Below are positions 1 to 58,150 of a stretch of 64,000 nt of DNA, piece after piece; positions within the stretch are counted from its first letter, which is position 1; each line of letters opens with the position of its first letter. The notes below the pieces were generated by a model. It was not told the DNA's origin. It did no database searches and saw nothing but the letters and a program-made list of their open reading frames with translations. The DNA is from Macrostomum lignano. Lineage: Eukaryota. Position numbers and translations under genes: made by a program. The DNA lies in contig NIVC01001183.1 in NCBI GenBank assembly GCA_002269645.1, positions 268,206 to 332,205 of the forward strand. Reading direction: 5' to 3'.

Positions 1-188
1 AGTGTTGTCACTTCCTAGGCCTCAATCCTGTACTCTTCTTATCTTTATAGTCGTTCAAGAAATAATCAGACTCGACAAGAAAGCATTGGAAAAAGCGCAC
101 AGAAGGTCACGAAGTGAACAAGTGTGTATTTAAGTTGCGATAGCAACGACAGTCAGTTGGGATCGTCAGGTTTGGCCAGCCGGCGGTC

Positions 189-546
189 TCAGACTGCCAA
201 GCCGAAGACGCTCACAATAACGTACATCGACTTGTCTCCATTTGATGATGCAGGACCCATCCGTCTGGCTGTCCCAGTAACAGGAGGAGGCTGTGTTCAG
301 GCCGGCGCCGTTCTTCTGCATCACCAGACAGGTCACGATGTACTTGAACGGCTTGCCCAGGCGGGTGAGCTGGTTGACGCACTGCTCGATGACTGACGAG
401 GTCCACTGGCCGACTTTGTTGTGCGAGTAGTGCGCCGTGCCGATGACGTCTTCCACGCTCTCCTTGATGATGTTGCTGACTTCGTCGACGGAGAAGCTGC
501 TCTCGTCGGTGGCTTCGAGGTTGTCCATGCCGGCTTTGAATGACAT
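189..546 (-). CDS. DYNLT1: Dynein light chain Tctex-type 1, single exon, apparent 2-nt frameshift near 235-241
   Basis: ORF 166..546 reads [53 protein letters not shown]. The canonical tail ([14 protein letters not shown], stop 189-191) is present in another frame after tggagacaag. Confidence 0.9.
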
Positions 547-5113: not shown

Positions 5114-8100
5114 TTAGCGCAGCTCCGGGAACTCCTCGTCTCGGACGCTGAATGGCCGGTGAAACCCGGCGGTGGCTCCGGCCGCCTGCGGCTGCTGTCG
5201 GCGCTCGGGCGGCCCGGGCTGCCAGTCCCAGCCGGACTGCCGGGCGCGCCGCTGCGGCCAGAAGCACCGCAGGTCCGGGCGCCACGCGAACCGAAGGCTG
5301 GAGTCGTCCGGCAGGCCCGACCGGTTGAGCCGGCGCCGGTCGCCTGTCCGGTCCGGGAAGTCGTCCGGGTGGGCCGGGATGCAGCCGCTGCGGTCCAGGC
5401 GGTCCAGCAGGCACGACCACATCCGGTTGGTGCGCAGCAGGCTGCGGTTGCCTGCGGCGGCGGGGTGGCAGCGGGCGACGGATGAATGCTGAGTGTCTGC
5501 TGAGTGACTGCTGAGTGACTGCTGTGCGTATGCTGTGTTTATGCTGTGTCCGCTAAATGTATGTGTCTGATGTGTCTGCTGTATCTGATGTGTGGGCTGT
5601 GTCTGTTGTGTATGCTGTGTTTTATGCGTCTGATGTGTCTGCTGAGTGTCTCATGTGTCTGCTGTGTGTCTGCTGTGTGTCTCATGTGTCTGTCGTGTCT
5701 GTTGTGTCTGCTGTGTGTCTCATGTGTCTGCTGTGTGTCTCATGTGTCTGTCGTGTCTGTTGTGTCTGCTGTGTGTCTCATGTGTCTGCTGTGTGTCTGC
5801 TGTGTGTCTGCTGTGTGTTTCATGTGTCTGATGTATCTGCTGAGTGTCTGCTGTGTGTTTCATGTGTCCGATGTATCTGCTGAGTGTCTGCTGTGTGTCT
5901 CATGTGTCTGCTGTGTCTTATGCGTGTCTTCTGTGTTTCTGCTGTGAGGCTGTTCCCTCCCGTTCCTATCCTGATCCCCAAGAATTTATTTCCGCTTCCT
6001 AAAAAGTCCTAATAGAAAAGCTGCCCCACCCCAGCCGCCAGCAGTCTCGAACTCACCAATGATGATGAGGCCGCGCCTGGCCCTGGTCAGAGCCACATTA
6101 ATCTGATTCTCATCCGTGATGAAGCCCAGGTACTTGTTCTCCCAGCCTGGCAGCGGGCACTTGGGGATCTCGTACTCCGGCAGAGACCGCACCAGCGATA
6201 GAATGACGTAATCAAATTCGCTGCCTGCGGCGTTAATGAGAGATAACTTAGTTATATTGACTACGCTACATATCGGCAGCCTGACAGACTTACCCTGGCT
6301 GGCAATGACAGTCTGCACCGCGGGATTGGCGAATCCCTCCTGCTGCAGCTTCTGCTTGATGACGCTGACCTGGTAGCGGTACTGCGACAGCACCCCGATG
6401 GAGCTCTCGACAAACCTGCGCGAACTCAGCCGCTGCATGATGTTCTTGTAGATGCGCACCTGCGGTGGGGTGGCGGGGTTGGGCGTGAGCAGGGCGGGAT
6501 CCTCAGGTTCATGTTCAGGTCCGATGGGTCAGTGAACCTCATATCCCATGGGTCAGTGAACCTCAGATCCCATGGGTCAGTGAACCTCATATTCCATGGG
6601 TCAGTGAACCTCATATTCCATGGGTCAGTGAACCTCAGATCCCATGGGTCAGTGAACCTCAGATCCCATGGGTCAGTGAACCTCATATTCCATGGGTAAA
6701 TCGTCACCAAACCTTAAAGACCTCCCGAACTCCTGATGCACAAAAGCATAAAATTCACCAACAGTTGCAGATATTTTGATAAATAATATCGATATCTACA
6801 ATAAGTAGCAAAAAACTCTTATGCCTACTGCCAACCTGCAGTAAGTAGTGCAAATGGCGCATTTTTTGGGTTCGAAAACGAAAATGTCTGGGCAGGAGTG
6901 TGCGGGCACGTAGCCCAGCCAAATGCGGTGCAATAGAAAATGGCAGTTTCCAAGAAAATCTGCAGAAACGCGTCAGGGATAAAAATAGACTTGGTCAACA
7001 GCTGGCGCTGGCTGCAGTGTACAGCGGTGCAACACAGATATGCGCAACTCAGCACTGCGCTGCGTGCCAGCTGGTCTCCAGCGATAAGCCAAGAGTGTTA
7101 ATAATTGTCCTCCTATACTCGTAAGTGCAGACTGATTGCTGAGCGCAAAGTTCATGTGCACTTTTTTGGTTTAACATTTTGATCCAGAGTTTGTGCGCAA
7201 TGGCATGTTTGACCAGCCTACGCACAATTCATGCTCCATTTGCCTTGCCTCAATATTTAACTGAATGCTCATCTTTTTTTAGAAACAAACCTGCCCCAGC
7301 CTCCATCATCAAGCAGGCCCAGACTTACCGCACTCTCAGCCTCCCTCATCATCAAGCAGTCTCAGCCTCCCTCATCATCAAGCAGTCCCAGCCTCCCTCA
7401 TCACCAAGCAGTCCCAGCCTCCCTCATCACCAAGCAGTCCCAGACTCACCGCAGTCTCAGCCTCCCTCATCATCAAGCAGTTCCAGACTCACCGCAGTCT
7501 CAGCCTCCCTCATCATCAAGCAGTTCCAGACTCACCGCAGTCTCAGCCTCCCTCATCATCAAGCAGTCCCAGACTCACCGCAGTCTCAGCCTCCCTCATC
7601 ATCAAGCAGTCCCAGACTCACCGCAGTCTCAGCCTCCCTCATCATCAAGCAGTCCCAGACTCACCGCAGTCTCAGCCTCCCGCTCGTTGCAGCGCGAGTC
7701 CTCGTGCCCCTCGTCGCTGGCCACGGTGGTCCGCTTCTCCTTGCCGGCGATGTGCAAGAAGACGACCCGCTCCTCCTCGCCCATGGGATGCAGATCCCCC
7801 ACATGCGCATCGGGCATTGTTGAGTAGACAAATCCCTGCTCCACACAGCGCTGCCGGGTTCGAACCCCGGCCAGCAGCCGTACAGAACGTTGGCGTTGGT
7901 GGCCAGCATTCGCTCGTAGGCGCTGTCCTCAGCCAGCAGGTGCGTGTTGACGCCGTTCCAGTAGCGGCCGGCGTCCTTGCGGATGTTGCCGTAGGGCTTC
8001 AGGCCGGTCCAGGACGGCGAGCGGCGGGTCTGCAGGCCGGGGCCGTTCGGCTGGCCGTCCTGGCCGCTGACGTTGTAGAAATACTCGGCGGGGAAGTCAG

Positions 8101-8192: not shown

Positions 8193-11100
8193 TTAATATC
8201 TATCTATCTAGCCAATATATTTGCTTTTAAACCCGTAAAAATAAACCCCGACGAAGGCCAGGATCTGGCCGAAATTATCGGTTCTTTTCGAATAATAGAC
8301 AACTGGCAAACTTCAATCTTCCGTGTGCGTGGTGTGCAGTTTCAAACTGCCTTATGCATATCTATCTATCCGCTGTGCCCAACCCGACACGAGAGAGGCG
8401 GTCTAGCATCAATCGTCCCCTGCTTATCCCAGCTCATATTTCATAAATTTGTCAGAACCGAAAGTCAGTAGAGGCGGCTCAACGAGCAGCATCCAGGCTG
8501 ATGTCGGCTCTGAAATTACACGCTTTTAATTGCTTTCACCTGCCAAGACTCAAAATCGCCTACCCGAAACGAAACCCACCCAGAACAGGTTTTGCGTCAT
8601 CGTCCATCGTCCCGCAGCCAGCGCTGAGGCAATTCTGCCCGTTCCACTGACTCCTGAGCACACAAAGCGCGCAACACATAGGCATGTACATCCAGTGTCT
8701 GGGGGCTGGCCCTCACGGGTGAGTCGGCACGATAACCACTAGCCAAATTAAATTAACTAAATTAAACTAAAATTAACGCTCTAAATTAACGCGCAAGACT
8801 CAGTGCATACCATTCTGTACTGGTAGCGCAGCATGATCATGTTGTCGGACTGGTACTCCAGGAACGACTTGCGCAGGCCCAGCAGGGCGGCCGTCTTGTT
8901 CTGGATGATGGGGCACAGCTGCTTGTGGTCGCCGATCAGCACCAGCCGTTCGGCATAGTGCGACCCCAGCCTTGTCGGCATCTCCGCGCCGCTGTCGTCC
9001 ACGCTGCCGGCCGGTGCCGCCCGAAGGTAGCCGACAACCGGCACGAGAGTCTCCGGCTGGGTGCACATGCCGGCCTCGTCGATGATGATCTGGCAGAAGC
9101 GGCAGGACTTCTGCAGCAGGCCGGACGAGCTGACGGAGGTGGTGCACAGGACGACCTCGAAGCGCTGCAGGGCGACGGACTTGGCGTCCGAGAGCGCCAC
9201 CCGGTACAGCTGCGTGATGGTGGACAGGTCCATGTCCCACGGCTGCAGCGGCTCGTTCCGCGTGGGATCAGTGAGCAGAGCGTACTCACGCAGGTGCGCC
9301 CTCAGGTACTTGTCCAAGTCAGGCAGCGAGGGCAGCATCTGGCAGTTTTGGAGTAAATGAAAAGCAGCTGGTGTTTTACCTGCTTTGCAGCAATGCATCA
9401 TCGATTTTGAATAAACAAAGTTCCAGGTACACGGGTTCGCCTCACATCTCACAGGTATCTCAAAGCACTACAGGTGAGTCCGGACACTTGTTACTAACTA
9501 AGGAGGTGACTTTAGTTTACTTTAGTGTTTAGTGTCACAAGAGCATTGACCCACCCGCCTCAAACAGACTGGCGCTGACCTGCACAAGAGCATTGACCCA
9601 CCCGCCTCAAACAGACTGGCGCTGACCTGCACAAGAGCATTGACCCACCCGCCTCAAACAGACTGGCGCTGACCTGCACAAGAGCATTGACCCACCCGCC
9701 TCAAACAGACTGGCGCTGACCTGCACAAGAGCATTGACCCACCCGCCTCAAACAGACTGGCGCTGACCTGCACAAGAGCATTGACCCACCCGCCTCAAAC
9801 AGACTGGCGCTGACCTGCACAAGAGCATTGACCCACCCGCCTCAAACAGACTGGCGCTGACCTGCACAAGAGCATTGACCCACCCGCCTCAAACAGACTG
9901 GCGCTGACCTGCACAAGAGCATTGACCCACCCGCCTCAAACAGACTGGCGCTGACCTGCACAAGAGCATTGACCCACCCGCCTCAAACAGACTGGCGCTG
10001 ACCTGCACAAGAGCATTGACCCACCCGCCTCAAACAGACTGGCGCTGACCTGCACAAGAGCATTGACCCACCCGCCTCAAACAGACTGGCGCTGACCTGC
10101 ACAAGAGCATTGACCCACCCGCCTCAAACAGACTGGCGCTGACCTGCACAAGAACATTCCGAAATGCGCCGGCCGATTTCACTCTGCGCTGCAGGAAGCT
10201 GCGGAAAATTTTGTCGAACGATTTGAGCAGGCGGGCCGACTTTCCGTTGCCGGTGCGCACGACCTCGTGCAGGGTGACCGGCTCCAGCTCGGCCGAGATC
10301 TCCGTCTCCGCGTTCACCTTCGACTTGGAGCCCTCGCCGGGCACCGGGTAGCGCCGCTGCTCGATCTGCTCGCTGGCCACGCGGACAATGCGCGGACACT
10401 TCAGGCGCAGCCGGTTCTGCAGGTAGGTCGCCACAACGTCCACAGACGCGTTGGACGGCCCGCAGTACAGCACCTGCCGCCGAGTCTGCAACTCCTTGCT
10501 CTTGTCCCGACCTTTGGCGCACATTTTCTTCTTCACGGGCTGCTTCGGCTGCCGGGCTTCTTTCGGCTGAGCCTCGATGCCCATCTCCTCGTACCGGATG
10601 CGCACGTCCGCGTCCGCCGCGTCCTCGTCCTCCACAGCTTCCTCGTCTTCCTGGTCGTCGTCCATCGCATCGTAGTAATCGTCGGCCTCGTGCCAGGTGT
10701 CGTCGATGCAGCGGTTGATGAACACGTACCAGTAGGTGAGCATGATGCCGGTGGAGGTCTTGCCGGTGCCTGCGAGTCGGAGAGCATTAGTGCAACAAGG
10801 TCATTAGTGCAAGGGTATTAGTCCAATAGTGTGAACACGTTTAGTCTAAAAAAATGATGGGAATTCTTTTGAGCGTCGCTTCCTGAGGAGCGTAACGAAC
10901 CTGGAGGCTTCCTTGGATACAACTATGTGAGCATGAGTGCTCAAGGGTCAGGGTAGTCTTACTGTGGACCAGAAGTTGCACCAAGGCCAGCAGTGCAAAT
11001 AAATAAAAAATAAGGACAATCATTTACCTGGCGGGCCCCAGATAAGCGTCACTGGCTGGGTCATTGCTTTGGAGATGGCCTTCTCTTGGCTGTCATTGCA

Positions 11101-14100
11101 CGGGATCGATTCAAAATGCTTTAAGTTGTTCTCAGCCGGAAGCCGGATGACATACTGTTGAACACCCAGGTTGCGCAAATGGTTCAGGTAGATGGTCCAG
11201 TCTCCGGCTAAAATGGGGTAAGTGAAGGTTTTAGCCAATCTAACAAAACGCCTGTTAATAACTTTACTGCATCAGAGCAAAAGTCGCCTACTGGCATCCA
11301 GTCTCCGCCGCTCGCACTCCAAGTTGATCAGCCTGCTGGCCAAATCGAACTTTTCAACGTCGACTAGCTTCTGCAAGGCGATTTCCTGCCGCCTGGAGGG
11401 CAGAAACTTGTAGATGACTTCAATGCTGGCCCGGCTGAGGCTCTCTTGCGGCGCGCTGGCGTCGCAGGACACTTCGTTCAAATGGAACACGACAAATCTG
11501 CAGATGTGAACTTTTGGCGCGCCGCACAAGACGGACTTGGTGTGCGGGGAGATGTACACCGACACGATGCCGCCGTGTCCAATCCAGGTGTGCGAGTCGC
11601 GCTTGGACCGGAGGCAGATGTATTCGGCGTAGCGCAGGCCCTCGATCGATTCTGCTATTCTAAACGCCTCATCTGTTGGGTCAATATCTGATTTGCTGAC
11701 CGCGTGTTCCTCCAGCTTCTCCTTTCTTCTCGGATCGTGATAAACAGAGTCGGAGAAGCGGATCAGTCTGTTCTGGCAGTACTGCTCAGTCAGGCAGAAC
11801 AATCCCAGGTGGCGCTTGTTCTTGTCATCCCAACGCCACAGCAGCTCCGCATCATGAACAACGAACGAATCATCAGCGGCGGCTGCCACGGTCGCAGACT
11901 CCATAGAAACAATTGGAAGCCAGACGTTGGCGTAATGCAGAGTATCCCGATAGGAATTCGAGCTGGCTTCATCAGCGATGCGCTCGAATGACGCCACTGG
12001 CCGCATTCTGTGAGCGGTGCACATGTCAATTGTGTCGCACAGTTCGACCATCTGAATAGTTGGTGTTAGCAGCCCGCTACTCATAACGTTGTAGAACTGC
12101 ACTTTCATTATATCGCCAAGTCGAACTTCTTTGCTGACGTGGCTGCTGCTGTTCATGATTGAGTTTTCCTGCTGGGCGGACTCTGAGCTAACAAAAAAAC
12201 TGCGAGCGACAAGCTCATCTGGAATTTCTACGATCCGATCTGCAGAGCTTTCGCAGTGCTGCCTTACACGATCGTAATTTCCTTGAGAATTCAGCAACTG
12301 CTCTTTTAAGCTTTTGGCACAGTTAAAATCAACAAAATCAAAGTATTGAGTACTTGAAACAACACATTCAGAATTTCTTTCCGGCTTTATTCCATGCTCA
12401 ATAAACGAGTTCCAGCGCTCGGAGCTTGGATGGCAAAAAATCTTTTTCTTCCACTGGAGCCGCATGCATCCATTGCTAAGCACAGGCTTGTCAATCAGGC
12501 TCAGGAAGCGCAGCGGAATGGTTTTGGACAAAGCCGGCAAAAATTCCAGAGATGATCCGGTGAAAAGAAGCTCGTCCTCTGACATCTCCCTAACTACAGA
12601 TAGCAAGCACTGCGGCTTTGTTTTGTTCAGCTCAGCAAACTCAAAACATTGACCGTCTTTTTCGAACCGTTTGCTCCGCTGCATCACACAATTCATGTAT
12701 TCTGCGAGATCTTCAATAGATTCGACTTTGCCTTGAATTTGGGCCTCAAGCTGAGCGCGCAATGCCCGATGAGCAAGAATATCAGGGTAACGGCGGAGTG
12801 GACTGGTGAAATGCACATAGTTTTCTATGTTCAGGTCGTAGTGCAAGCTTGGTAACTTCGGTTGTTGAGCTTGAAACTCGATGTACCTTGCCGGTTGAGA
12901 AATTTTATGCCAGTCTGAAATCGCCAAGAAGAGATAGGGAAACCGAGTCTCTGAGTACAGCATCAGAAGAGCGCTTCTCGGATCTTGAGAGCAAAGCTGT
13001 TGCAAAAGCCGCGAATCATCTTTGAAAATTCGAATATTCTGCCTCGGCACTCTCGCTTCATCATAAATTGCCGATAGGTTCCGGAAATGTCTGCTCAGCT
13101 CGGCCGATTGCACAACAGAAAATTCAAACTTTGAGCGCCACAGGTCGACATCAACGTCACGCGGCGACTGCTGTACCCGATTTACAAATGGCTCAAGGTA
13201 CTTGCTAGAAGCCAGAAACTCGCCAACAGTTCGATTGGCCAAAACCATGAACTCTTCAACCAGGGCGCTTGCCTCAAATTTGTCTCCAATGGCTGATTGC
13301 GCATCTTCCAACTGATCTCGCAGCACAAATGCCGCAGAACCCATTCTGTGAATTCTCAGCTCTTTCGCGATGCTCCATAAATAGCGTATAGCTGCTATGA
13401 GCTCCTGTGATGGAGGGACGTCGAAATCCGCCTCTTTGCCAAGCAGTATGTCATGCACCGCATCCTTGTTCAGACGATGATTGCTGTTAATAAGAGTCAT
13501 TGCGGGAGTTCGTCTTCTCAGATCCCACTCGCCAGTCAGATCCTGTTTGAATTCAAAAATAGTCGATAGACAGCGCCTGTCCTTTCCCTCCACAAGACTA
13601 AGAAGTGACTCAGACAGATCGCTTGGAAACAAATGATTGGGAGTGACACCAGCCTGTTTGGCAATCCTCGGTGGGTAGATAGTCACCACTCTGTTTCTGC
13701 CCAGCTTGTCAAGGTGCGAGTCCTTCTCGATGTAGTAGCTGACGTCGGTGATGTGAACGCCAACAAGGGCTACCCTAGTTTGCTGATTGTACTGGAAGCT
13801 GATGGCATCATCCATATCCTTAGTATCAGGGTTATCAATGGTAATGGTAAAATGACTTCTAAAGTCGCGGCGCTTTGGGTGGTCTGACGTGTCTGTCGCA
13901 ATGGTTCTAATTCTCTCCAGGTCTCGCTTTACTGCTGGCGTCTCAAGCATCTTTCTTGGCAAGGAATGCTTTAACATTAAAACCTCTAGGGTGCTTTTGA
14001 GGCTGTCAACGCGATCGAAAACGTGAACTACTTTACCAGTCGGATAAAACTGATTGACGTTCCAGCCGAGGTAGCAAACCACAAACAGTTTGTCGCAGTT

Positions 14101-15123
14101 GTGCTTCTGAACATGCAAAGGATTTCCATAAGGAGAAAACTCGAACTGAGCTTTGCTTTGAGCATTTTTACTCGCCATGTCAAGGCCCCTCTTGCCCTTT
14201 TTGCCTTTCTGTTGGTCCCTTTTGATTTCGGCACTTTCCACAAGCCTCTTCCGCGGGTTGTACACTGACACGTAGTGCAGATTGGCGTACTTCTCCACAT
14301 CCTCCATGCCCCTCTCATCTCGATTCTGCACACCAGTGGCCCTGCGACTTTGAAAGGGCTGACTGCGCATAACATTTTGCTCATAATATTCTCGGTACCA
14401 AACCCGGGCATGCCTGTTGTCGTAGCCAATCTTTGGAAAGCTGTGGCACAGAGGCCGCATGAAAGAGCCATCGTCATAGATGATCTCGCAAATAAACAGC
14501 TTGTAAACCAGTTTCTCATGCTGTTTGAGCACACCAACAACTCTACCGTGACCTAAACGCGGATTGTCTTCATCTTTATCCAGCACTTCAACGAGAACAG
14601 TGTCTCCCTGACACGCCCGGCCGCAGTTTGTGCGACCCTTCAGCTCCACCTTCTCCAGCTCATCTGTCGCTTCAACGGGCACCGCCCAGCCTTGCTGCGA
14701 GCCCTCCAGTTGCAACTCGCAGACTCGAAAGTTTTTCGGCTTTCGCGCCATGATTTTGCTGATTCTTGACTTTGAGAGCATGGCATACTTTTCCTCATTG
14801 CAATATCGACCTTCGATGACACCTTCAGCCTCGGTAGAATTATACTGGCGATTGGTGATGCGGACAACAATGCGCTCATCCTGGAGGATGCTTGTAACTC
14901 TGGATGTCAGACGAATGCGCAACACATTGTTGATGACGGCCTCAGGGATGGCAACAGGATACGAGCCTTGGTCGAAACGCATCCTGCACAGCCTGTATTC
15001 GGCAACATTATTCAGTTTGCTCCTCCATTTCTCTTCGGAGGACTGCACTGTAGTATCAAATTCGTCATATTCCTGACAGCTGTCAAAAAGCTTCAGTATT
15101 CGGGCCAGCTCCTCGGGCGAACT
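5114..15123 (-). CDS. HELZ2: HELZ2-like protein: RNB (RNase II/R) domain plus UPF1-like SF1 helicase. Exons 15123-11292, 11207-11028, 10769-10144, 9338-8811, 8113-7665 (1-nt frameshift), 6459-6057, 5451-5114; 5' end uncertain
   Basis: RNB motifs TIDNPDTKDMDDAIS and HFTSPLRRYPDILAHR. Walker A GPPG|TGKT spans an intron; also YCGPSNASVD, IIIDEAG, LIGDHKQL, QYRM|HPSLADFP, SQGKSV and NVALTRARRGLIIIG. RVVFLHIAGKE..DEGHEDSRCNERE matches a HELZ2-specific segment. All junctions are GT-AG and phase-consistent. Confidence 0.9.
5488..5945. repeat. Degenerate TG-rich minisatellite (ctgctgtgtgt / ctcatgtgt units) in the last HELZ2 intron
   Basis: Visible tandem low-complexity units; the overlapping ORFs are repetitive. 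Confidence 0.85.
6523..6697. repeat. 24-bp minisatellite, ~7 copies, intronic
   Basis: Unit catgggtcagtgaacctcatattc / catgggtcagtgaacctcagatcc. Confidence 0.95.
7296..7681 (-). repeat. 43-bp minisatellite whose unit contains the exon end and 5' splice site
   Basis: Minus-strand unit gagggaggctgagactgcg|gtgagtctgggactgcttgatgat; ~6 full copies plus degenerate ones. Confidence 0.95.
8141..8210. repeat. (CTAT)n microsatellite, reads GATA on the HELZ2 sense strand
   Basis: Direct reading. Confidence 0.95.
9537..10153 (-). repeat. 47-bp minisatellite, 13 near-identical copies, unit spans the exon/donor junction
   Basis: Plus-strand unit acaagagcattgacccacccgcctcaaacagactggcgctgacctgc, period 47 (9537, 9584, ...). 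Confidence 0.97.
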
Positions 15124-16173
15124 CTACAAAGGAATTTTGATAAAAAGTAGTTTGCTACAAAATGGCATCTTAAACCTTAATAAGTTATGTCAAACTTTTT
15201 GTCAAATTTTCTAATTTAAACTATTTTAATAGGTAAAATGCTTTTTTCCATTATACAAGAGATAATATACATAGAAGTTATAATCAAAAGTTTCTATCCT
15301 ATATTCCATAGTCTCAAATATTTATCATACACAAAATTTTTTGGCCCACAGATTGCTGCTGGAGATCAATGGCTTCTCTATCTGTGCTACATGCAGAGAG
15401 ATAGTAGCTATTAACGAATATTGCCAATGCACTAAGAGATAGACTATTGCATGTGGAAAATAAATTTTGCTATGCAGCTCATATAAATAACTTTTTTGCA
15501 CCCTGATGCAGGCAAAATATTTATTCATAAAATAGCAGTCTCAAAACTATAGGCTATAATATACTTGTACTTACTTATAGTTCTAATTGTATAGATATGC
15601 ATCATTAACTATAGGTAGATAAAATTCTTTAGGTTTTCAATTTTTTAACTCTTACTAAGTACTTAGGAAGTGACTAAAAAGCAAAAAAACTACCATACTT
15701 TAAAACCTCCTGTTTTACATACCTTGGTTGTTAGTCATTGACTCTTAGTCAAAGAATCTCTTAATTTCAAAAAAAATATTAATCTAAAATTCAGTAGGTC
15801 ACTGTATTTATTGAAGTTTGAAGTTTAAATTACAAAGTATAGTTGTCCCCTATTTTAATCATTAGTTAGTTGATGACAAGGTATCATAAGTATTCAACTA
15901 TTAATAAATTATTTGGTTACTTCATTATCCTTCTTTGGCTATCCAGAAAGTTGTGAGAAGATATATATTGTTAATAAATATATTTTAGACCTATAAAAAA
16001 TAGCACTAGTTGATAATGTGATCTTCCCTTGTATTGATTATAATTGTCAACAAGTAATCAAACCTAAAATTTTAAGTAACCAAACAATCTTTACCAAAGC
16101 CTCTTGTCAATTGCAATATAACTTCTTAAAATTTACTGTAATCACTAAATATGGTTGATGATCCCTTTGATCC

Positions 16174-16470
16174 CATACATGCGCAACGTCCAAAATTCGG
16201 TCGGCCGTGCGACTTAGTTTTAACAAAAATGCGACGTAGTTTTTGGCCAAAAATGCGACTTACATGTAAAAAAACCCTAAAGCAAAATTAACGCAACTTT
16301 GGGTAAACGGCGGGAGTAACTATGACTGTCTTATCAGGCAAAAATGCCTCGTCAGCTACTTAGTACTACTGCGTGGGTATTTTTTGGGTGGGCATTTTTG
16401 CGACTTCCTTGGTTGGCTGCCAAATCAGTCGGCCGGATCGGCCGACTCGGCCGACTGTTGCGCATGTATG
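16174..16470. mobile_element. 297-bp non-autonomous TIR element (P- or hAT-like) carrying a 28S rDNA fragment
   Basis: 14-bp perfect TIR catacatgcgcaac (16174-16187) / gttgcgcatgtatg (16457-16470). 8-bp TSD tttgatcc (16166-16173, 16471-16478). Subterminal gtcggccg and aaaaatgc repeats. Confidence 0.88.
16301..16364 (+). other. 64-nt fragment of eukaryotic 28S rDNA (helix 69-71 region; R2/I-PpoI target), not a functional rRNA gene
   Basis: gggtaaacggcgggagtaactatgactgtcttatcaggcaaaaatgcctcgtcagctacttagt aligns without gaps to the recalled conserved GGGTAAACGGCGGGAGTAACTATGACTCTCTTAAGGTAGCCAAATGCCTCGTCATCTAATTAGT. The first 27 nt are identical; 53/64 overall. Confidence 0.92.
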
Positions 16471-16502
16471 TTTGATCCCCAGTGTAAAAAATGGCAAATA
16501 CC

Positions 16503-17421
16503 CTATAGTTTAGAAGACAAGGGTACTTGCTATTTGTTAGCATATATCAGTATACATCCTAGTGTATATGACATAGTAGAAAATTTTAAACTTACATCTA
16601 TGACATACCTACGTACATTTTAGGATCAAATAAAGTGAGTGACTTAATATAGAATATGCTACATGCAACACCATCATTATGGAACAAAGAATAATAAAAA
16701 ACAATTTTAAACCATGCATCCTTAAAAACTTGTTTTTATTTTATTTTTAGCAAATAAAAAATCTATAAAGTACTTCTTTTAAAATTGTTTTTTTTTTCAT
16801 TGAATTTTGTAAAAGTGCATAATTTTTAAGTTTATTATTTTATATAAATAATAAATTCAAAACGAAAAAATGTACAACTTTGGCATACATATATTATAAT
16901 AAAAAACTTTTTAGTCCCAATTTTCTGGAAGGCATATTTTTGCTCTTGCTGACAATCTTGGTGTACACTTGGCATATAGAATTTTCAGGTTCAACATGAA
17001 GTATATACAGTTGGCATACAAGAAATAGCCAAGTTCAAGGCTAATGTAATTGTGTAGTTAAATATCAACCAACATCGAAAGCTCTTTAAAAATAATTGGA
17101 AACTAAAATAGAAAATATTAACGCAATCATAAGAAAACCTTAATTAAAACATAGAATACCAGTTTTTAGCAAAATAAAGCTGTTTTAAAGTTTAAAATTC
17201 TTCAAAATATGGTATATAAACAATTTTAGTCATAACATAATTTTTTTTAATTTTATGTTAGTATAAAATAAAAAAACATGAATTTTCATTCTAGCATGTG
17301 CTTGCAATGATCCAGACTATGGACTAGACTTGGCATACACTAATATACAATCCAAACTATGGCAAGTACCCTTGTTGTATGCCAGGAAATCCTGGAATAC
17401 ATGTTACTTTCTAAACTATAG
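16503..17421. mobile_element. Degenerate inverted-repeat element (possible TA-TSD MITE)
   Basis: ctatagtttagaa + acaagggtacttgc at the left end; reverse complements gcaagtacccttgt and ttctaaactatag at the right end, with a ~35-nt indel between arms. TSD not clean. Confidence 0.45.
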
Positions 17422-19496
17422 TATGTCTATAGCATGTATATAATGATTTCCCATAGTCAAAAAGGTGGCCTTTGCCACAGAAAATTCTAGAGCACACAAG
17501 GGGTCCAAGATGCACTCAGCACATAATCACAGCATATATAAGGGATCCACAATGCTCCTAGTGCACAATCATAGTGCATGGAAGGGGTTCCTGATAACTG
17601 ATATATTAGCACATAATCAAAGCAGAGATTGATATCTCTAGTGCATGCAGCACACAAGTTTTTTGGCAAAAATGTTGTTAAATTGTAATGATTAGTTCAT
17701 CCAACTTTTACTAGATAAAATGATAATTTATAATAATTTATAATGTATGTTCAATTGGGCTTAAGTTATATTGTGATGTTTTAGTGAATTGATATTTCCA
17801 TCAACAGTTTTTTATTAGGATTCATTTAAAATAAAAATTAAATTAAATTAAGCACTATAATCATCGTGTATGTAAAAAATATACCCAATTTCATCATGAT
17901 TGGGACATTCTGTCCATCCAATACTTACATATTGTTCGCAGCGTCTATTATTGGACATATTCAGTGGGTTTTAATTTTAAGGTGCAGTGGAGATTAAAAA
18001 TATGAACACAAGTCTTCAATACTGCAGATAGTGCATTGAAAATTTATCGTCACGTAATGTTACGAGATTCCGCAACTCTCTTTCCTGGTCGTGACTAACG
18101 AAAAAGGTGTGTAAGCAAACGACTTGTCGCGGACGCGGACAAAATAAGTAATCGATTTCAAGGAAATTAAAGAAATTAAAATGGTAAATTTTCGTTTTGC
18201 ATTCATTTTAACTAAATGAAACATAGTATAAATAAGTTCTATATTTACAAAAATTCGTATATTAAAACAAAAAAATGCTACAGTAGCAATTTGTTCATCA
18301 GTGGCCGTTGATTTTTGTTGAATCAGTTAAACCTACGTAAATAATTAGCATATATTAAATTGGTAGATCATATTTTGTGAGACAAATGGAAGTCTAGATA
18401 AAAAATAGCTAGTGAATTAATTTTATTTTGATCAAATTAATTTGGGCTTATGATGAGGACCGAATTCTACAGCCAGTAGAGATATCAGTTTTTTTTCTTT
18501 CCTCTCTTCCTTCTTATCCTGTCTCCCCCATAAATCTTATTCTGAATTCGATCTCATATCCGATCATTTTCATTTGATTCTAACAGCATACTTTTTTTCA
18601 AGTCATAGTTATAACCAGATGTCAAGGTATCAGGCTGTCTGTGGGTCTACAGCCGTTATATGGCCTGGTAGAATCATGTGACTATACTGGCGCTTTCTCA
18701 TTTTTGACACCATATGAATCGCTTTGAGATTTCGACCTATACATGGTAATTGTTGGTGATTGGTCCATATTGGTTCGTGGTTGGGATTTTTATACAAGCG
18801 GTCAATATTTTGATAACTGTGACCCGTCCTGACCGCTATCCCTAAAAATATTTTCGTTTTAATCTTAATCTGCTAGCGGATTATCCAATTACACTCTTAT
18901 CTTCATCCCTTCATAGTCATATTTTCATTGACTTTGGACTTGGCATTGCTGAAACTTGTAGATGCAAATAATTTTAAATCAAAATTGAAATTCAAGACAA
19001 ACAAGCCGTCTGCTATTAGCAAGCCGTGGCCCAATAGTAAACATTTGTGGCCTTTTGCAGACAGCGAGGAAATCAGTTTATTGTTAGTAGGCTGAAGAGG
19101 GAAAACAGGCAAGCTTACACTGCTGGTCAAAGATTCTGAACAAAGAAGAATTCAACTTAAAATATACAGATTTTTTGCGAACTTAAAAATTAAGAGCAGA
19201 CAAGGGCGAACTAAAGCTTTGAGTCGTTTGAGTCAAAGCCTAGCAGAAAATGATTTACTAATCTTCTACCAAAACTTAAACCGAATTCACACACATGAAA
19301 CTGCGCAAAACAGTTCCGATATTAAATAAAGTCCACAGGCATCAGCAGGGCTTGAGTAAAATATTAAATTGAATGAATCACAATGCCTAAGGACAGGCCG
19401 TTGCTTGCCTCCTGCGAACACACGCGGCAAAGTATTTCTGAACGCACCATGCAAAAAACATTTCTTTATTGTATAGCAACGGGAAATTCTTGACGG

Positions 19497-20438: not shown

Positions 20439-23400
20439 TCAGTCGCAGTCGTCCTCCACGTAGTCCCGACTGCGCCGGCGACCTCCTCGGCTGGGCCCCT
20501 GCCGGGACTCCGCCGTACTGGAGGAAGAAGAAGCGGAGGCGGCAGCGGCGGCGGCGGCGGCGGAGGCAGCGGCAAGGCGAGTGGCGAGCCCCACAGGCGG
20601 GAGGAAGCCGCCGACGGCGCCTAGCTGTGCGGCCTCGCTGTCAGCCGCGTCCGCATCTTCGCCAGGCGCCGCTTCGTCGTGATCCCCGTCGGTGCCAGAC
20701 GCAGACAGGGGGCTCCGGCAGACCGGGCAGGTGCCGCGCTGAAGGGAGTCAGAAAGGGAGCGCATGGGATGCATAGGGTTGCCACAAGGGATTATTTAAT
20801 GGCTATCGGACCGTCATGCATTTCATATAAGCTGGGTGGCTTCATGAACTGGGTGAGGCACTGGAGTCCCGCTGACAGCACTGGGTGAGGCACTGGAGTC
20901 CCGCTGACAGCACTGGGTGAGGCACTGGAGTCCCGCTGACAGCACTGGGTAAGGCACTGGAGTCCCGCTGACAGCACTGAGTGAGGCACTGGAGTCCCGC
21001 TGACAGCACTGGGTGAGGCACTGGAGTCCCGCTGACAGCACTGAGTGAGGCACTGGAGTCCCGCTGACAGCACTGGGTAAGGCACTGGAGTCCCGCTGAC
21101 AGCACTGGGTAAGGCACTGGAGTCCCGCTGACAGCACTGGGTGAGGCACTGGAGTCCCGCTGACAGCACTGGGTGAGGCACTGGAGTCCCGCTGACAGCA
21201 CTGGGTGAGGCACTGGAGTCCCGCTGACAGCACTGGGTGAGGCACTGGAGTCCCACTGACAGCACTCTGGAGTCCCGCTGAGAGAGATAGCGAAGTCCCA
21301 CTGAGGGAACAAGATGCAGCAAGAAATACCTTCTCCAGCCAGGGCTTGATGCACTGTTGGTGGAAGTGGTGCTGGCACGGCAGAACATCGGCCGAGACGC
21401 CCTGCTTGAACTCGTCGAGACAGACAAAGCACTGAAGGCCATCTTTCACCTGCGATTGAAGAGGAGAGGTGTGGGAGGCGACTTTGTAGGCTGAGACGAG
21501 TTGCTGATTTAGTCTGCTAAAATAGAAGGCGGAATGATAGACTCGGCTGTACTGCTGAGGAGCTTGATTGGGTCAGGAGCAGTGAGCTGAGAATGAGATG
21601 CAATGAACTGAGAATGAGATGCAATGAGTTGAGAATGAGATGCAATGAACTGAGAATGAGATGCAATGAACTTAGAATGAGATGCAATGAGTTCAGAATG
21701 AGATGCAATGAGCTGAGAATGAGATGCAATGAGCTGAGAATGAGATGCAATGAGCTGAGAATGAGATGCAATGAACTGAGAATGAGATGCAATGAGTTGA
21801 GAATGAGATGCAATGAGCTGAGAATGAGATGCAATGAGCTGAGAATGAGATGCAATGAGCTGAGAATGAGATGCAATGAGCTGAGAATGAGATGCAATGA
21901 ACTGAGAATGAGATGCAATGAACTTAGAATGAGATGCAATGAACTGAGAATGAGATGCAATGAGCTGAGAATGAGATGCAATGAGCTGAGAATGAGATGC
22001 AATGAGTTCAGAATGAGATGCAATGAACTGAGAATGAGATGCAATGAGTTCAGAATGAGATGCAATGAGCAGAGAATGAGGTGCAATGAGCTGAGAATGA
22101 GATGCAATGAGTTCAGAATGAGATGCAATGAACTGAGAATGAGATGCAATGAGTTCAGAATGAGATGCAATGAGTTCAGAATGAGATGCAATGAGCAGAG
22201 AATGAGATGCAATGAGCTGAGAATGAGATGCAATGAACTGAGAATGAGATGCAATGAGTTCAGAATGAGATGCAATGAACTGAGAATGAGATGCAATGAG
22301 CTGAGAATGAGATGCAATGAGCTGAGAATGAGATGCAATGAGTTGAGAATGAGATGCAATGAGCAGAGAATGAGATGCAATGAGCTGAGAATGAGATGCA
22401 ATGAGCTGAGAATGAGATGCAATGAACTGAGAATGAGATGCAATGAGTTGAGAATGAGATGCAATGAGCTGAGAATGAGATGCAATGAGCTGAGAATGAG
22501 ATGCAATGAGTTCAGAATGAGATGCAATGAACTGAGAATGAGATGCAATGAGTTCAGAATGAGATGCAATGAGCAGAGAATGAGGTGCAATGAGCTGAGA
22601 ATGAGATGCAATGAGTTCAGAATGAGATGCAATGAACTGAGAATGAGATGCAATGAGTTCAGAATGAGATGCAATGAGTTCAGAATGAGATGCAATGAGC
22701 AGAGAATGAGATGCAATGAGCTGAGAATGAGATGCAATGAGCTGAGAATGAGATGCAATGAGCTGAGAATGAGATGCAATGAGTTGAGAATGAGATGCAA
22801 TGAGCAGAGAATGAGATGCAATGAACTGAGAATGAGATGCAATGAGCTGAGAATGAGATGCAATGAGTTCAGAATGAGATGCAATGAGCAGAGAATGAGA
22901 TGCAATGAGCTGAGAATGAGATGCAATGAGTTCAGAATGAGATGCAATGAACTTAGAATGAGATGCAATGAGTTGAGAATGAGATGCAATGAACTGAGAA
23001 TGAGATGCAATGAACTTAGAATGAGATGCAATGAGTTGAGAATGAGATGCAATGAACTGAGAATGAGATGCAATGAGTTCAGAATGAGATGCAATGAACT
23101 GAGAATGAGATGCAATGAGCTGAGAATGAGATGCAATGAACTTAGAATGAGATGCAATGAACTGAGAATGAGATGCAATGAGTTCAGAATGAGATGCAAT
23201 GAGCTGAGAATGAGATGCAATGAACTGAGAATGAGATGCAATGAGCTGAGAATGAGATGCAATGAACTGAGAATGAGATGCAATGAGTTCAGAATGAGAT
23301 GCAATGAGCAGAGAATGAGGTGCAATGAGCTGAGAATGAGATGCAGTGAGCTGAGAATGAGATGCAGTGAGCTGAGAATGAGATGCAATGAGTTGAGAAT

Positions 23401-26400
23401 GAGATGCAATGAGTTGAGAATGAGATGCAATGAGCTGAGTTGCGCAATGACTCAATGCAGGGCTAACCTGCTCCTCAGCTATTGTGACAGTTTTAATCGC
23501 GGCCAACTGTTGCCGCGTGGCCGGAGGCGGAGCGCCGCCGTTGCTGTCCACCTGTCCGAGCAGATGGGTCATGACCTGGTCCAGAGCGCCGGTCTCCAGG
23601 AAGTTCATCATGCGGTGCATGCCGAAGCTGAACAGCGGTACAGACTGGTGCTGCTGAGGCCCCTCCTGGTGATGCAGATGGTGCAGCAGGTGGCGCAGAT
23701 GCTGCGCTGTGGCACTGGCGGGTGCCGAGGGAGTAGCAGGTCCTGCCGGCTGGTGAGGGGGGGCATTGACTTTGTATAACACTGAAAAAGCAAATTTGCA
23801 GCAAACAGCGCTTCTCTGGCAAGCAAGCTCTACTTACTTTGAGTCGTTAATCTCTTCAAGGAAGTCCATGCCACATTGACTGCAGGTGATAGTCTAAAAA
23901 CATTTAGAAGAGCAAGCCTACTTTAGTCAAGTTGCCATTTGCTCTTATTTGATTGCTTTGATCAATTTGATTAGTTTATTTGATTGCTTTGATCAATTTG
24001 ATTAGTTTATTTGATTGCTAGACTGCCTAGATATAGCAGGCCTAAACAATGATTTACATACAGGTGACAAATTCTAAGAGAATAAGAGCATATAGGGGCA
24101 TAACCTAGATAGTTTGACTCATACATATGCAACCTTGGGAAGCACCTGGCCATTTCTATTGGCAACACACACATGTAAGTCGCTATTGGCTAAGAGCAAT
24201 TGCATGATTACTATTCTATCCAATAGCGACTTATGGCTTCTTCTTAATCTATATTTCTGACACTATAAACCTTAAAGAAGAAAAGGAAATTTTAGTAGCT
24301 ATATAATATATATATATGAAAGAAAAGTTTAAGTAGCATTATAAAAAAATTACTCTACATGTAAAAATATTAACATTAAATTGAAAATATATATTAGCAC
24401 TATTTTGTCTTTATAATTTTAGGCCTACACCTACATTTTTTTGTAAAAATTGTAAAAATATAAAAAATTATATTTTATTAGCTTTTTATATTAATATATC
24501 AATATTTTGCTTATTATATAGGCTAATAAATAAGTGTTTAACTAAGTAGGAAATTAGAAGATTGCCTGTCTATGCCTATAGGTTGATATAGGCCTTTATC
24601 TATTTAGTCAAGTTTATTTTATTTAATAGTATAGTTATAAAATGAACTTTAATAAAGCATAATATAAAAAGGCCAAAAAATCACAATATAGGCTTAATAA
24701 GCCTGCCCTAGGCTAAATATGGCATTAAGCACTAGTGTTCCACCATAGCCAAAGCTATGGCTATAGGATCCTATGACAAATATGGCAAAATAGGTGCCTA
24801 TAGCAGCTACAGATAGGCCTATGATAGCTAGCTGCTCTTATGGTTACGACTATAGAAATATGGTAGTTACTATCATATTCCATAGATTCCCATAGCCATA
24901 GTTATTAATTTAAAAAAAAAGTGAAAAAATATTAGAAGGAAGTGCTTATTCCCATGGTCCCGTGCCAATAATTCAAATTTTATCCACACGGATCTGTGTT
25001 GATAATTTCTAGCTTATCTTTATGGCAGCTTATTTGGAATAAAGAACATTAAAATGAATCTGTTTAAAAATTGCTTTCACTGTTTTAAAAATCTTCCAAA
25101 AAAACTATATGTATTGAATACTGAATAATATCGAGTTTGTTAAAATTGTTTCATCATTAAAAGGGTTAATTTTAAATATTTGCTTAGCTGCCAGCTGTGC
25201 TTAGAATGACCAAATGACCCAAATATTGAGGCAAATGAGACTTGCAAAATTCAAAATTCAAAATATAATAATAATGATAATATTACTAATAATAATGACA
25301 ATATTGATTTAACGTCAATACACAAAACTAAACACAAGCAACTGCACAATCTTAGCCGTGGGGATAAGCTAAAAATTATTGACACGGATTTGTGTGGATA
25401 AAATTAGAATTATCGGCATGGGACCATGGGGATAAGCACTTCCATATTATTAGAAACAGGTAGAATAAAACAAAGATATTTTAGTAAACTGTATTATCAA
25501 CTTAGAAACTTATATAATATACCTCATAAAGTACAATAAAACACTAGCAAATTTGAATTTTTATTAATGTGAAAAAGTTCAGAATTAGTACTTTCAGTAG
25601 TGATTAAGTATTGTTGCTCAATAAAAAGATGAAATATAATCTTACAAAGACAATTAAGTGTGTCTTTTATTTTCTAACTTAATTTGCAGTTGTTTAAGCA
25701 CTAGGTTATCTTCGTGACCAGGTCCAGGATGGAATTTTTGTGCAAAATCCTAGATGCATTCCATGCATGCTAAAAAAAACTTGTGCACTTGTGCATACAT
25801 TTCTAGCAAACTTGCACAACTTTAAAAAGCTTACGTGCGCACAGCTTAATATTCTAAGAAATCTTGTATAATTTAATTTAAATTTTGAATATTGCACTTG
25901 TTACAGTAAAATAAAGTTATTGCAAATTAAAAAAACAAAGCTACTGGGAACTACAATAAACTAAAAAGAATAATATTTTTAAAGGATTTATTTAAACTTT
26001 AATTAAACATTGTAAAAATATTGCTAAGAAATTCAAGTGGCAAAAAAATTGTGCTTTCATAGGTAAAAAACTTTTTGTTCCAAACTTGTCATATAAAGAT
26101 TCCATCCTAGCAAGTTCTTGATTCAAAATATAAATTGTTTTCTAGACTTTTTGTTAAAACTATGGCTATGGCTATAGGAACTATGGGAATGGGAATATGG
26201 TAATATTAGGGTCCCTATGGCTACAGAATATAGAGAATTGGAATAAGCCATAGTTTTGCTTATGGCTACAGCTATGGTACATGGACCCTCCTTATGGTGG
26301 AACACTATTAAGCACTATGAAGGTTAAAACTAAAAACTAAAGATAAAGTAGGATAAGCAAGTCTTACCGAATTGTCAATGTCATTTGATACTTCAGAGCT

Positions 26401-28967: not shown

Positions 28968-55208
<26,241 letters not shown>

Positions 55209-56187: not shown

Positions 56188-56707
56188 GATATCTGCACAA
56201 TTTAGGAGTGCAGCCCCCTAGAGCAACTTAGTTGCCCGGGAATCCTCAACCTTCGGCACAGAGACGAGAAAAAGGTAGAAACGAAGAGCAAATATTTGTG
56301 AGCAATCGAAGTATTGAATTTAAACACACGCAATGCAATAAATAAATATATTTCCATAGAGCAGCAGATTATTGCTTGAATTGAAAAGGCAAAACCATGC
56401 AAAAAAGGCTCGGCAGGCGGACAGTCTGAGCTCAGCGAGATTGGCGAACAGGAGCAAATCAGGCGCAGCCCAGTGCAAGGCTGGATACTGCAGATTAGCG
56501 GACTCGGCTGTGCGTACATTGATTCACATTATTAATGCTTAACAGTTAAAACAGCAAGTCATTTTCTGCAAGTTCAAATCAAGACATCTAAATTTGCTTC
56601 TCGAATTACTTAAAGCTGCTTAATAACCGGGGGGAGCCCGTTTTGGGAAAGTCGAGGAAAACCGAGTGGAAAAGAACTGGCTTGGACTGAGTGGGGTTGA
56701 AAATGGT

Positions 56708-58150
56708 AGGGAGTGCACATTGGGAGGATAGGGAGTGTACATTGGATGGATAGGGAGTGTACATTAGATGGGAGGGAGTGTACATTGGATGGTTGGGGAG
56801 TGTACATTGGGTGGGAAGGGAGTGTACATTAGATGGGAGGGAGTGTACATTAGATGGGAGGGAGTGTACACTGGGTGGGAAGGGAGTGTACATTGGATGG
56901 ATAGGGAGTGTACATTGGATGGGTAGGGAGTGTACATTGGATGGGTAGGGAGTGTACATTAGATGGGAGGGAGTGTACATTGGATGGGTAGGGAGTGTAC
57001 ATTAGATGGGAGGGAGTGTACATTGGATGGGTAGGGAGTGTACATTGGATGGGTAGGGAGTGTACATTGGATGGTTGGGGAGTGTACATTGGATGGGAGG
57101 GAGTGTACATTGGATGGTTGGGGAGTGTACATTGGGTGGGAAGGGAGTGTACATTAGATGGGAGGGAGTGTACATTAGATGGGAGGGAGTGTACACTGGG
57201 TGGGAAGGGAGTGTACATTGGATGGATAGGGAGTGTACATTGGATGGGTAGGGAGTGTACATTGGATGGGTAGGGAGTGTACATTAGATGGGAGGGAGTG
57301 TACATTGGATGGGTAGGGAGTGTACATTAGATGGGAGGGAGTGTACATTGGATGGGTAGGGAGTGTACATTGGATGGGTAGGGAGTGTACATTGGATGGT
57401 TGGGGAGTGTACATTGGATGGGTAGGGAGTGTACATTGGATGGGTAGGGAGTGTACATTGGATGGTTGGGGAGTGTACATTGGGTGGGAAGGGAGTGTAC
57501 ATTGGATGGATAGGGAGTGTACATTGGATGGGTAGGGAGTGTACATTGGATAGTTGGGGAGTGTACATTGGGTGGGAAGGGAGTGTACATTGGGTGGGAA
57601 GGGAGTGTACATTGGATGGATAGGGAGTGTACATTGGATGGATAGGGAGTGTACATTGGATGGATAGGGAGTGTACATTAGATGGGTAGGGAGTGTACAT
57701 TGGATGGTTGGGGAGTGTACATTGGGTGGGAAGGGAGTGTACATTGGGTGGGAAGGGAGTGTACATTGGATGGATAGGGAGTGTACATTGGATGGATAGG
57801 GAGTGTACATTGGATGGGTAGGGAGTGTACATTGGATGGTTGGGGAGTGTACATTGGGTGGGAAGGGAGTGTACATTGGGTGGGAAGGGAGTGTACATTG
57901 GGTGGGAAGGGAGTGTACATTGGATGGATAGGGAGTGTACATTGGATGGATAGGGAGTGTACATTGGATGGGTAGGGAGTGTACATTGGATGGTTGGGGA
58001 GTGTACATTGGGTGGGAAGGGAGTGCACATTGGATGGGTAGGGAGTGTACATTGGATGGTTGGGGAGTGTACATTGGGTGGGAAGGGAGTGTACATTGGG
58101 TGGGAAGGGAGTGAACATTGGGTGGGTAGGGAGTGCACATTGGGTGGGTA
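56708..58150. repeat. 21/22-bp minisatellite, ~65 copies, between convergent genes
   Basis: Unit gggagtgtacattggatggata and variants. Confidence 0.96.

Follow-up and report, generated by a model that had tools for sequence, protein, structure and literature searches.

A recently mobile miniature DNA transposon of Macrostomum lignano with a core derived from the 28S rRNA gene

The element in a HELZ2-like gene and its empty homeologous site

The window analysed here is a 64,000-nucleotide (64-kb) stretch of the Macrostomum lignano contig NIVC01001183.1 (assembly GCA_002269645.1; locus L002). An open reading frame of 1258 codons on the minus strand (11272-15048), with the domains OB_HELZ2 and RNB, neighbours the element described below and is 100% identical to both BOX15_Mlig017669g1 and g2 of M. 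lignano, which lie on different contigs of the same assembly. The window holds g1, and the homeologous gene g2 is on NIVC01000542.1 (L001). Mapping of the annotated protein places exon 1 of g1 at 17958-17929, bordered by the donor GTAAGT, and exon 2 from position 15123 onwards, after TTTGTAG, both on the minus strand. The intron between them, intron 1 of this HELZ2-like gene (15124-17928, minus strand), contains the element, whose 28S-sense strand runs antisense to the gene.

A perfect 8-bp target-site duplication (TSD), TTTGATCC, occurs at 16166-16173 and again at 16471-16478, and bounds an element of 297 bp (16174-16470). The terminal inverted repeats (TIRs), CATACATGCGCAAC on the plus strand at 16174-16187 and, on the minus strand at 16457-16470, a repeat that reads GTTGCGCATGTATG on the plus strand, are complementary at 14 of 14 positions. 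The element, its perfect 14-bp TIRs and its perfect TSD had been described in a sequence-only reading of this DNA, and all were found again. A TIR pattern allowing up to two mismatches has four matches in the window (0.67 expected), of which the element owns only the two perfect ones. The G+C content of the element is 46.8%, against ~27% for the surrounding intron. The element lacks coding capacity: its longest frame free of stops runs for 67 codons, a protein search with this 67-aa frame returned no candidate sequences, and exact look-up of an internal 37-aa ORF gave no protein on record.

From the left TIR inwards, the left subterminal and interior region (16188-16300, plus strand) contains one CGGCCG (16202-16207), three GCGAC[G/T]TA motifs (at 16209, 16231 and 16255), two CAAAAATGC repeats (at 16224 and 16248) and the block TTTTTGGCCAAAAATGCGACTTAC, which is conserved in all three copies of the family. 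The 28S (LSU) rDNA-derived core follows at 16301-16364 on the plus strand. To its right lies the family-specific block GGGTGGGCATTTTTGCGACTT (16386-16406, plus strand), identical in copy A (see below), and then a subterminal array of three TCGGCCG motifs (16428-16456, plus strand; CGGCCG at 16430, 16439 and 16448); a single GCGAC[G/T]TA is also present on the right side. Folded as single-stranded DNA, the element reaches z = -5.6 relative to shuffled sequences, with pairing between the two TIRs and within an internal inverted repeat, i.e., between the left CAAAAATGC and GCATTTTTG at 16392-16400, that brackets the 28S core.

The flanks of the element are 99.95% and 99.5% identical between L001 and the window. 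L001 is without exactly 16174-16470 and one copy of the TSD, and the window flanks joined by a single TTTGATCC are present there verbatim. This exact empty site, which bears no footprint, demonstrates a true and recent insertion in the window, and the verbatim joined flanks rule out both chance and a chimeric assembly, the latter an artefact that the sequence-only reading had allowed for. The polymorphism is reciprocal: two further copies, A and B, are inserted at 18927-19341 of L001, and the window is empty there, with the target GTCCGGAC at 9478-9485. The reciprocal empty sites date both insertion events after the two homeologs diverged. The M. lignano genome comprises three homeologous subgenomes, which show a SNP difference of 1.4-2.4% and are set apart mainly by large indels (PMC10733133); a look-up with the Tctex-1 gene of the locus returned the window's own contig and no other, and hence no third homeolog.

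With TIRs, a TSD and empty site, small size and no coding sequence, the element is a MITE, i.e., a non-autonomous class II TIR transposon, and a genuine and recently mobile one. The two insertion events, each with an empty homeologous site, likewise bear out the earlier claim of a mobile family.

Other features of the locus concern annotation and repeats. The annotated g1 protein (1558 aa; gene 9319-17958) ends inside a 47-bp minisatellite, with residues 1428-1553 mapping to 10519-10142. Downstream of this end are ORFs with the helicase domains AAA_11 and AAA_12 (8781-9452 and 5986-6459), and the g2 model comprises 2105 aa; the g1 gene model of BOX15_Mlig017669 is probably truncated. The minisatellite has 13.3 copies in the window (9536-10158) and occupies ~1.4 kb in the homeolog (L001 17494-18926). 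The Tctex-1 homeologs (window 166-531, minus strand; L001 29035-29382) differ by a C-terminal frameshift, giving 121 aa versus 115 aa, and the annotated product has no initial methionine in either. Micro- and minisatellites are extremely dense in the window, where 32 TRF rows have scores of at least 400, including a 21-bp unit repeated 88.6 times and (AGAT)n repeated 277 times (examples are at 21579-23439, 39066-40172, 41885-43317, 49320-50664 and 56705-58150). These repeats account for numerous long but spurious ORFs and for the alternation of GC-rich with AT-rich stretches along the window.

Three copies with one 28S-derived core

The three copies measure 297 bp (window), 239 bp (A) and 168 bp (B). 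Copy A is complete, with TIRs CATGCATGCGCAAC and GTTGCGCATGTATG, and copy B is inverted and truncated, ending in ATTGCGCATGTATG; the left TIR of the window copy is conserved in A and B at 12-13 of 14 positions. On the outside, the A/B pair is flanked by a perfect duplication of the palindromic GTCCGGAC. The whole double element (L001 18919-19349) consists of the complete copy A, ATCCGGAC and the inverted copy B without its inner end, and looks like two hits in one 8-bp target or a 'double-Ds'-like rearrangement. It lies ~50 bp from the edge of the 47-bp minisatellite.

Copies A and B are members of the family diverged by 17-25%, and the interiors of the three copies are 71-83% identical in pairwise comparison. 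The window copy is longer than copy A mainly by a ~23-bp extra AAAAATGCGAC[G/T]TA unit on the left (16224-16262) and by two TCGGCCG motifs on the right, and these differences in unit number indicate that the subterminal arrays expand and contract between lineages.

These three copies, from two insertion events, come from ~137 kb of M. lignano DNA, i.e., the window, L001, a further locus L003 and the extra part of a fourth, L004. In the same four sequences, an nhmmer search with a three-copy profile found no further members, and loose TIR pairing (up to three mismatches, up to 12 kb apart, with a TSD check) found neither an autonomous partner nor core-less relatives. A family-specific 21-mer and two gapped signatures had 0 matches in viral, bacterial/archaeal and metagenome contigs, which contain essentially no flatworm DNA, and no matching sequence strings occur in the supplements of the M. 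lignano genome paper, which dropped short and unclassified repeat models from its repeat library.

The first 27 nucleotides of the core, GGGTAAACGGCGGGAGTAACTATGACT (16301-16327), show no difference from the Rfam eukaryotic LSU consensus, which served as the LSU reference, and the whole core (16301-16364), aligned to 64 LSU positions, is identical to it in 57 of 66 columns. The claim of 64 nt colinear with 28S, identical at the first 27 of 27 positions, is thus borne out. The local alignment score of 85 compares with a maximum of 24 among 500 shuffles, and a 22-mer of the core has a single match in the window, where chance would give 0. The covariance model RF02543 extends the similarity weakly to 16285-16366, aligned to model positions 2228-2310 of 3401, with 33.7 bits and E = 4.6e-7 in a 116-nt search, a score that falls short of the gathering score of 50 and profits from the truncated-end mode; in a 651-nt search the same match scores only 11.8 bits. 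The core thus lies below the 50-bit score (RF02543) that would mark an rRNA gene or pseudogene. Across the 64-kb window no Rfam family reached its gathering score, which indicates that no other rDNA is nearby, as the earlier reading had stated. A search of viral contigs for the intact 28S site gave 0 matches.

Homology of copies A and B to 28S came from direct alignment, with the LSU not being reported for them by Rfam in E-value mode. Each of the three copies covers the same 64 LSU positions; identities are 57/66 (window), 52/66 and 52/64, and the alignment scores lie between 60 and 85, where shuffled sequences reach at most 27. The copies have derived states in common (C to G in ACTCTC, TTAT for TTAA, and the loss of bases in TAGCC), and each keeps some ancestral 28S states that the others have lost. 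The identical LSU boundaries and the shared derived changes point to one capture in the ancestor of the family, followed by divergence, rather than to independent captures or chance. A one-off capture by a single element, which the earlier reading had considered, is rejected by the presence of the core, with the same boundaries, in three of three copies. We regard as negligible the alternative that the core is unrelated to a DNA transposon and represents a chance match, an assembly chimera, or one of the dispersed rRNA pseudogenes or retroposons, of which SINE28 is an example. The Rfam score below the LSU gathering threshold would suit such an origin, but the alignment scores far exceed those of shuffled sequences in three independent copies, exact TIRs, TSDs and empty sites are found on two contigs, and neither a poly-A tract nor other hallmarks of retroposition are present.

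The core could instead be the relic of a composite, in which two elements inserted close to each other in a 28S gene and were later moved as a unit by their outer ends, together with the intervening rDNA. An adjacent double insertion does exist, in that copies A and B have a shared outer TSD, and this stretch of 28S is a known hotspot for mobile elements (PMC10946416). However, the core is not bordered by inward-facing TIR remnants and no copy inserted in rDNA was seen, and we judge a composite origin to be improbable.

Target-site motifs and conservation of the core

The segment of 28S from which the core derives includes the targets of R2, I-PpoI and Pokey. R2Bm needs an R2 upstream motif (RUM) at -34 to -22, with the consensus A-31 WWWGCNNNA-22, and a cleavage motif, RASIN (T-6 TNANNT+1), at a spacing that tolerates at most one extra base; mutation of T(+1) abolishes cleavage (Wilkinson et al., PMC10499050). 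The fixed RUM letters A-31, G-27, C-26 and A-22 are kept in all three copies, as AACGGCGGGA, AACGGCAGGA and AACGGCAGAA. The first of these, in the window (16306-16315, plus strand), equals the wild-type 28S motif from -31 to -22, and the identity of this copy to 28S extends from -36 to -10. RASIN at an allowed spacing (0 or +1) is absent from all three, which have TTATCAG, TTATAAA and TTATTAG in its place. The critical A(-3) and T(+1) are altered in each copy, and TTNANNT, sought across the whole core, occurs in none. The TTAA used by Pokey is absent from the site region of all three copies, as is the I-PpoI site CTCTCTTAAGGTAGC from the copies altogether. What is left of the site in the window (16326-16344, plus strand) is CTGTCTTATCAGGCAAAAA, with 14 of 19 identities to the LSU sequence CTCTCTTAAGGTAGCCAAA. 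Depending on the copy, 11-14 of these 19 positions around the site still match the LSU, compared with 22-25 of the 25 upstream and 18-19 of the 20 downstream.

The description of the cargo as the 28S target site therefore holds for the neighbourhood and for RUM, but RASIN (by R2Bm criteria), TTAA and the I-PpoI site are missing from every copy. As judged from these motifs, the core does not provide a functional target for R2, I-PpoI or Pokey; for R2 the scoring used R2Bm rules, which may not transfer to flatworm R2s, members of a different clade. Landing pads for elements that depend on cleavage are accordingly disfavoured on motif content, and the ideas of decoys, landing pads and a source of small RNAs put forward by the sequence-only reading are speculation. 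With the sites cut by rDNA-specific elements destroyed in every copy (n = 3), the element is a curiosity with an unusual cargo rather than a proven decoy.

The mimic explanation holds that dispersed copies bind R2 protein or other factors of the rDNA site, as decoys, sponges or landing pads. The intact RUM letters, the match of the window copy to 28S upstream of the site, and the occurrence of R2 elements in Platyhelminthes (PMC13188248) would be consistent with it. The missing RASIN at any spacing, the changes at A(-3) and T(+1), the missing TTAA and I-PpoI sites, and the lack of an inserted element in any of the three cores speak against it, and we consider it very improbable. Only slightly less doubtful is a version in which the 28S blocks are kept for function, either as copies of the R2 recognition sequence that are competent for binding and dead for cleavage and that would titrate R2 or a site factor, or as binding sites for a host or rDNA-binding factor acting as a cofactor of transposition.

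Conservation within the core is uneven. In two 28S-derived blocks, 7 of 45 columns vary among the three copies, much as in the TIR (2 of 14), and in the middle of the core 10 of 18 do. In the remaining left interior, 27 of 75 ungapped columns vary and 39 more are gapped (Fisher p = 0.02 in a test that rests on three copies and on blocks defined post hoc). Identity of the blocks to the LSU is 88-100% per copy, which is roughly what neutral decay would give at the overall divergence.

The main rival to a passenger is a core whose blocks were co-opted as cis-acting sequences for transposition or persistence, for example as binding sites of the transposase or of a host factor. The blocks are as invariant as the TIR and nearly free of indels, the internal inverted repeat brackets the core, and the element folds strongly. 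In addition, copies that parted well before their recent insertion have kept the blocks, which could reflect constraint on the lineages that remained mobile. Against this, only three copies are compared, the blocks were picked after inspection, copies A and B are not independent (they have common changes such as GGCAG), and the block identities are roughly those expected from neutral decay. We therefore favour a passenger module and regard the cis-acting role as unlikely, though worth taking seriously. Two further ways of maintaining the core were rejected: upkeep by gene conversion from rDNA, given the degenerate middle of the core in each copy, and upkeep of an rRNA-like fold, given that the H69 and H71 stems, by inspection, are broken in copies A and B.

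Superfamily, related systems and significance

The TSD is 8 bp at both insertion events, and an 8-bp staggered cut suggests a P- or hAT-like enzyme. P elements start with CATG and target GC-rich, palindromic sites, and hAT elements have a terminal motif of the YARNG type and the target consensus nTnnnnAn. The termini of the family are CATAC/CATGC (copy A starts with CATGCATG, the window copy with CATACATG) and resemble the CATG start. One target, GTCCGGAC, is a GC-rich palindrome and resembles the P-element target consensus GGCCAGAC, whereas the other, TTTGATCC, is neither GC-rich nor palindromic. By the hAT traits the termini are a misfit, GTCCGGAC fits nTnnnnAn and TTTGATCC does not. The earlier proposal that an 8-bp TSD with CA(T) termini fits P or hAT thus stands for the length of the TSD, which is compatible with hAT and with the 7-8 bp of the P superfamily (PMC5199201), and fails for the termini with respect to the hAT motif. 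The element resembles MITEs of these two superfamilies in its 8-bp TSD, in the CA start of its short TIRs and in having subterminal motifs that recur. It differs in that its target in the window fits neither consensus well and that no transposase partner was found in the window, L001, L003 or L004.

The explanation that we consider probable is a P-/hAT-like MITE family, mobilized in trans, that captured a piece of 28S once and carries it as a passenger module rather than as a functional target. A transposase encoded elsewhere would recognize the 14-bp TIRs, and probably also the subterminal CGGCCG and GCGACTTAC motifs, excise the element and reinsert it via the 8-bp staggered cut, and the family would have been mobile in this way since the recent genome duplication of M. 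lignano. A single uptake of ~64-82 bp of a 28S rRNA gene would have occurred in its ancestor, most probably when filler DNA was copied in the course of double-strand-gap repair or in a comparable event, and the cleavage and integration motifs would have been lost in that ancestor, with all descendant lineages carrying the 28S piece as an internal module. We observed directly the structure of the element, the empty sites, a core present in every copy and the disappearance of the site motifs, whereas trans-mobilization, assignment to a superfamily, the way in which the 28S piece was captured and its role as a passenger are inferences.

Pack-MULEs and the filler DNA of Ds and P deletion derivatives resemble the element in having non-autonomous TIR ends around host sequence, presumably captured by gap repair. 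Captures by DNA transposons usually involve protein-coding genes and are limited to one element or a small subfamily. In contrast, the capture here is a short, highly conserved rRNA segment that is ancestral to lineages diverged by 17-25%. Pokey and mPok of Daphnia (piggyBac superfamily) are, like this family, DNA transposons and MITEs with rDNA-derived internal sequence, and Pokey inserts at the TTAA inside the very 28S neighbourhood from which the core derives. However, the rDNA module of Pokey is from the IGS and that of the family from the 28S coding region; Pokey makes TTAA duplications and targets rDNA, whereas the family makes 8-bp TSDs, has been observed in gene introns only and no longer has the TTAA in its core.

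Among retroelements, the 5S-derived SINEs (SINE3 etc.) and the Cassandra/Ajax TRIMs also have an rRNA-gene module in every member, but there the 5S module is a Pol III promoter of clear benefit, and we know of no promoter in an internal 28S fragment. The mammalian SINE28 is likewise a dispersed mobile body derived from the 28S/LSU rRNA gene. It is a Pol III retroposon of the LSU 3' end (Longo et al. 2015, PMC4994717), whereas the element described here has an internal LSU segment (2228-2310 of 3401), TIRs and an 8-bp TSD, and moves as DNA. A SINE or retroposon identity is rejected on these features, with SINE28 having variable TSDs, an A-tail and no TIR.

A 2024 review of rDNA and transposable elements lists the 5S-derived SINEs, Cassandra/Ajax TRIMs, SINE28 and the Pokey IGS repeats as rDNA-derived sequences of transposable elements; its table contains no DNA-transposon family with a core from the 28S coding region, and further literature searches returned no description of a MITE with a 28S core. 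The earlier reading knew of no described case, and as far as could be checked a MITE with a family-wide 28S core is new to the literature.

Families of transposable elements with an rRNA-gene module are known almost only as retroelements with a 5S promoter, plus SINE28, and the family described here indicates that cut-and-paste elements can also fix such a module. Members of the family have transposed after the recent duplication of the genome of M. lignano, a model flatworm amenable to transgenesis, and the two homeolog-polymorphic insertions are ready PCR markers. Annotation of the M. lignano genome calls for caution, in that rRNA-like matches may be MITE cores, and the intronic copy in the window would yield a pre-mRNA with a 27-nt perfect complement of 28S. 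If the 28S blocks are unconstrained, the family amounts to an elegant but unremarkable instance of sequence capture; if they are constrained, it would be a tractable case of an rDNA fragment co-opted as a cis-element of a transposon, or of cross-talk with R2.
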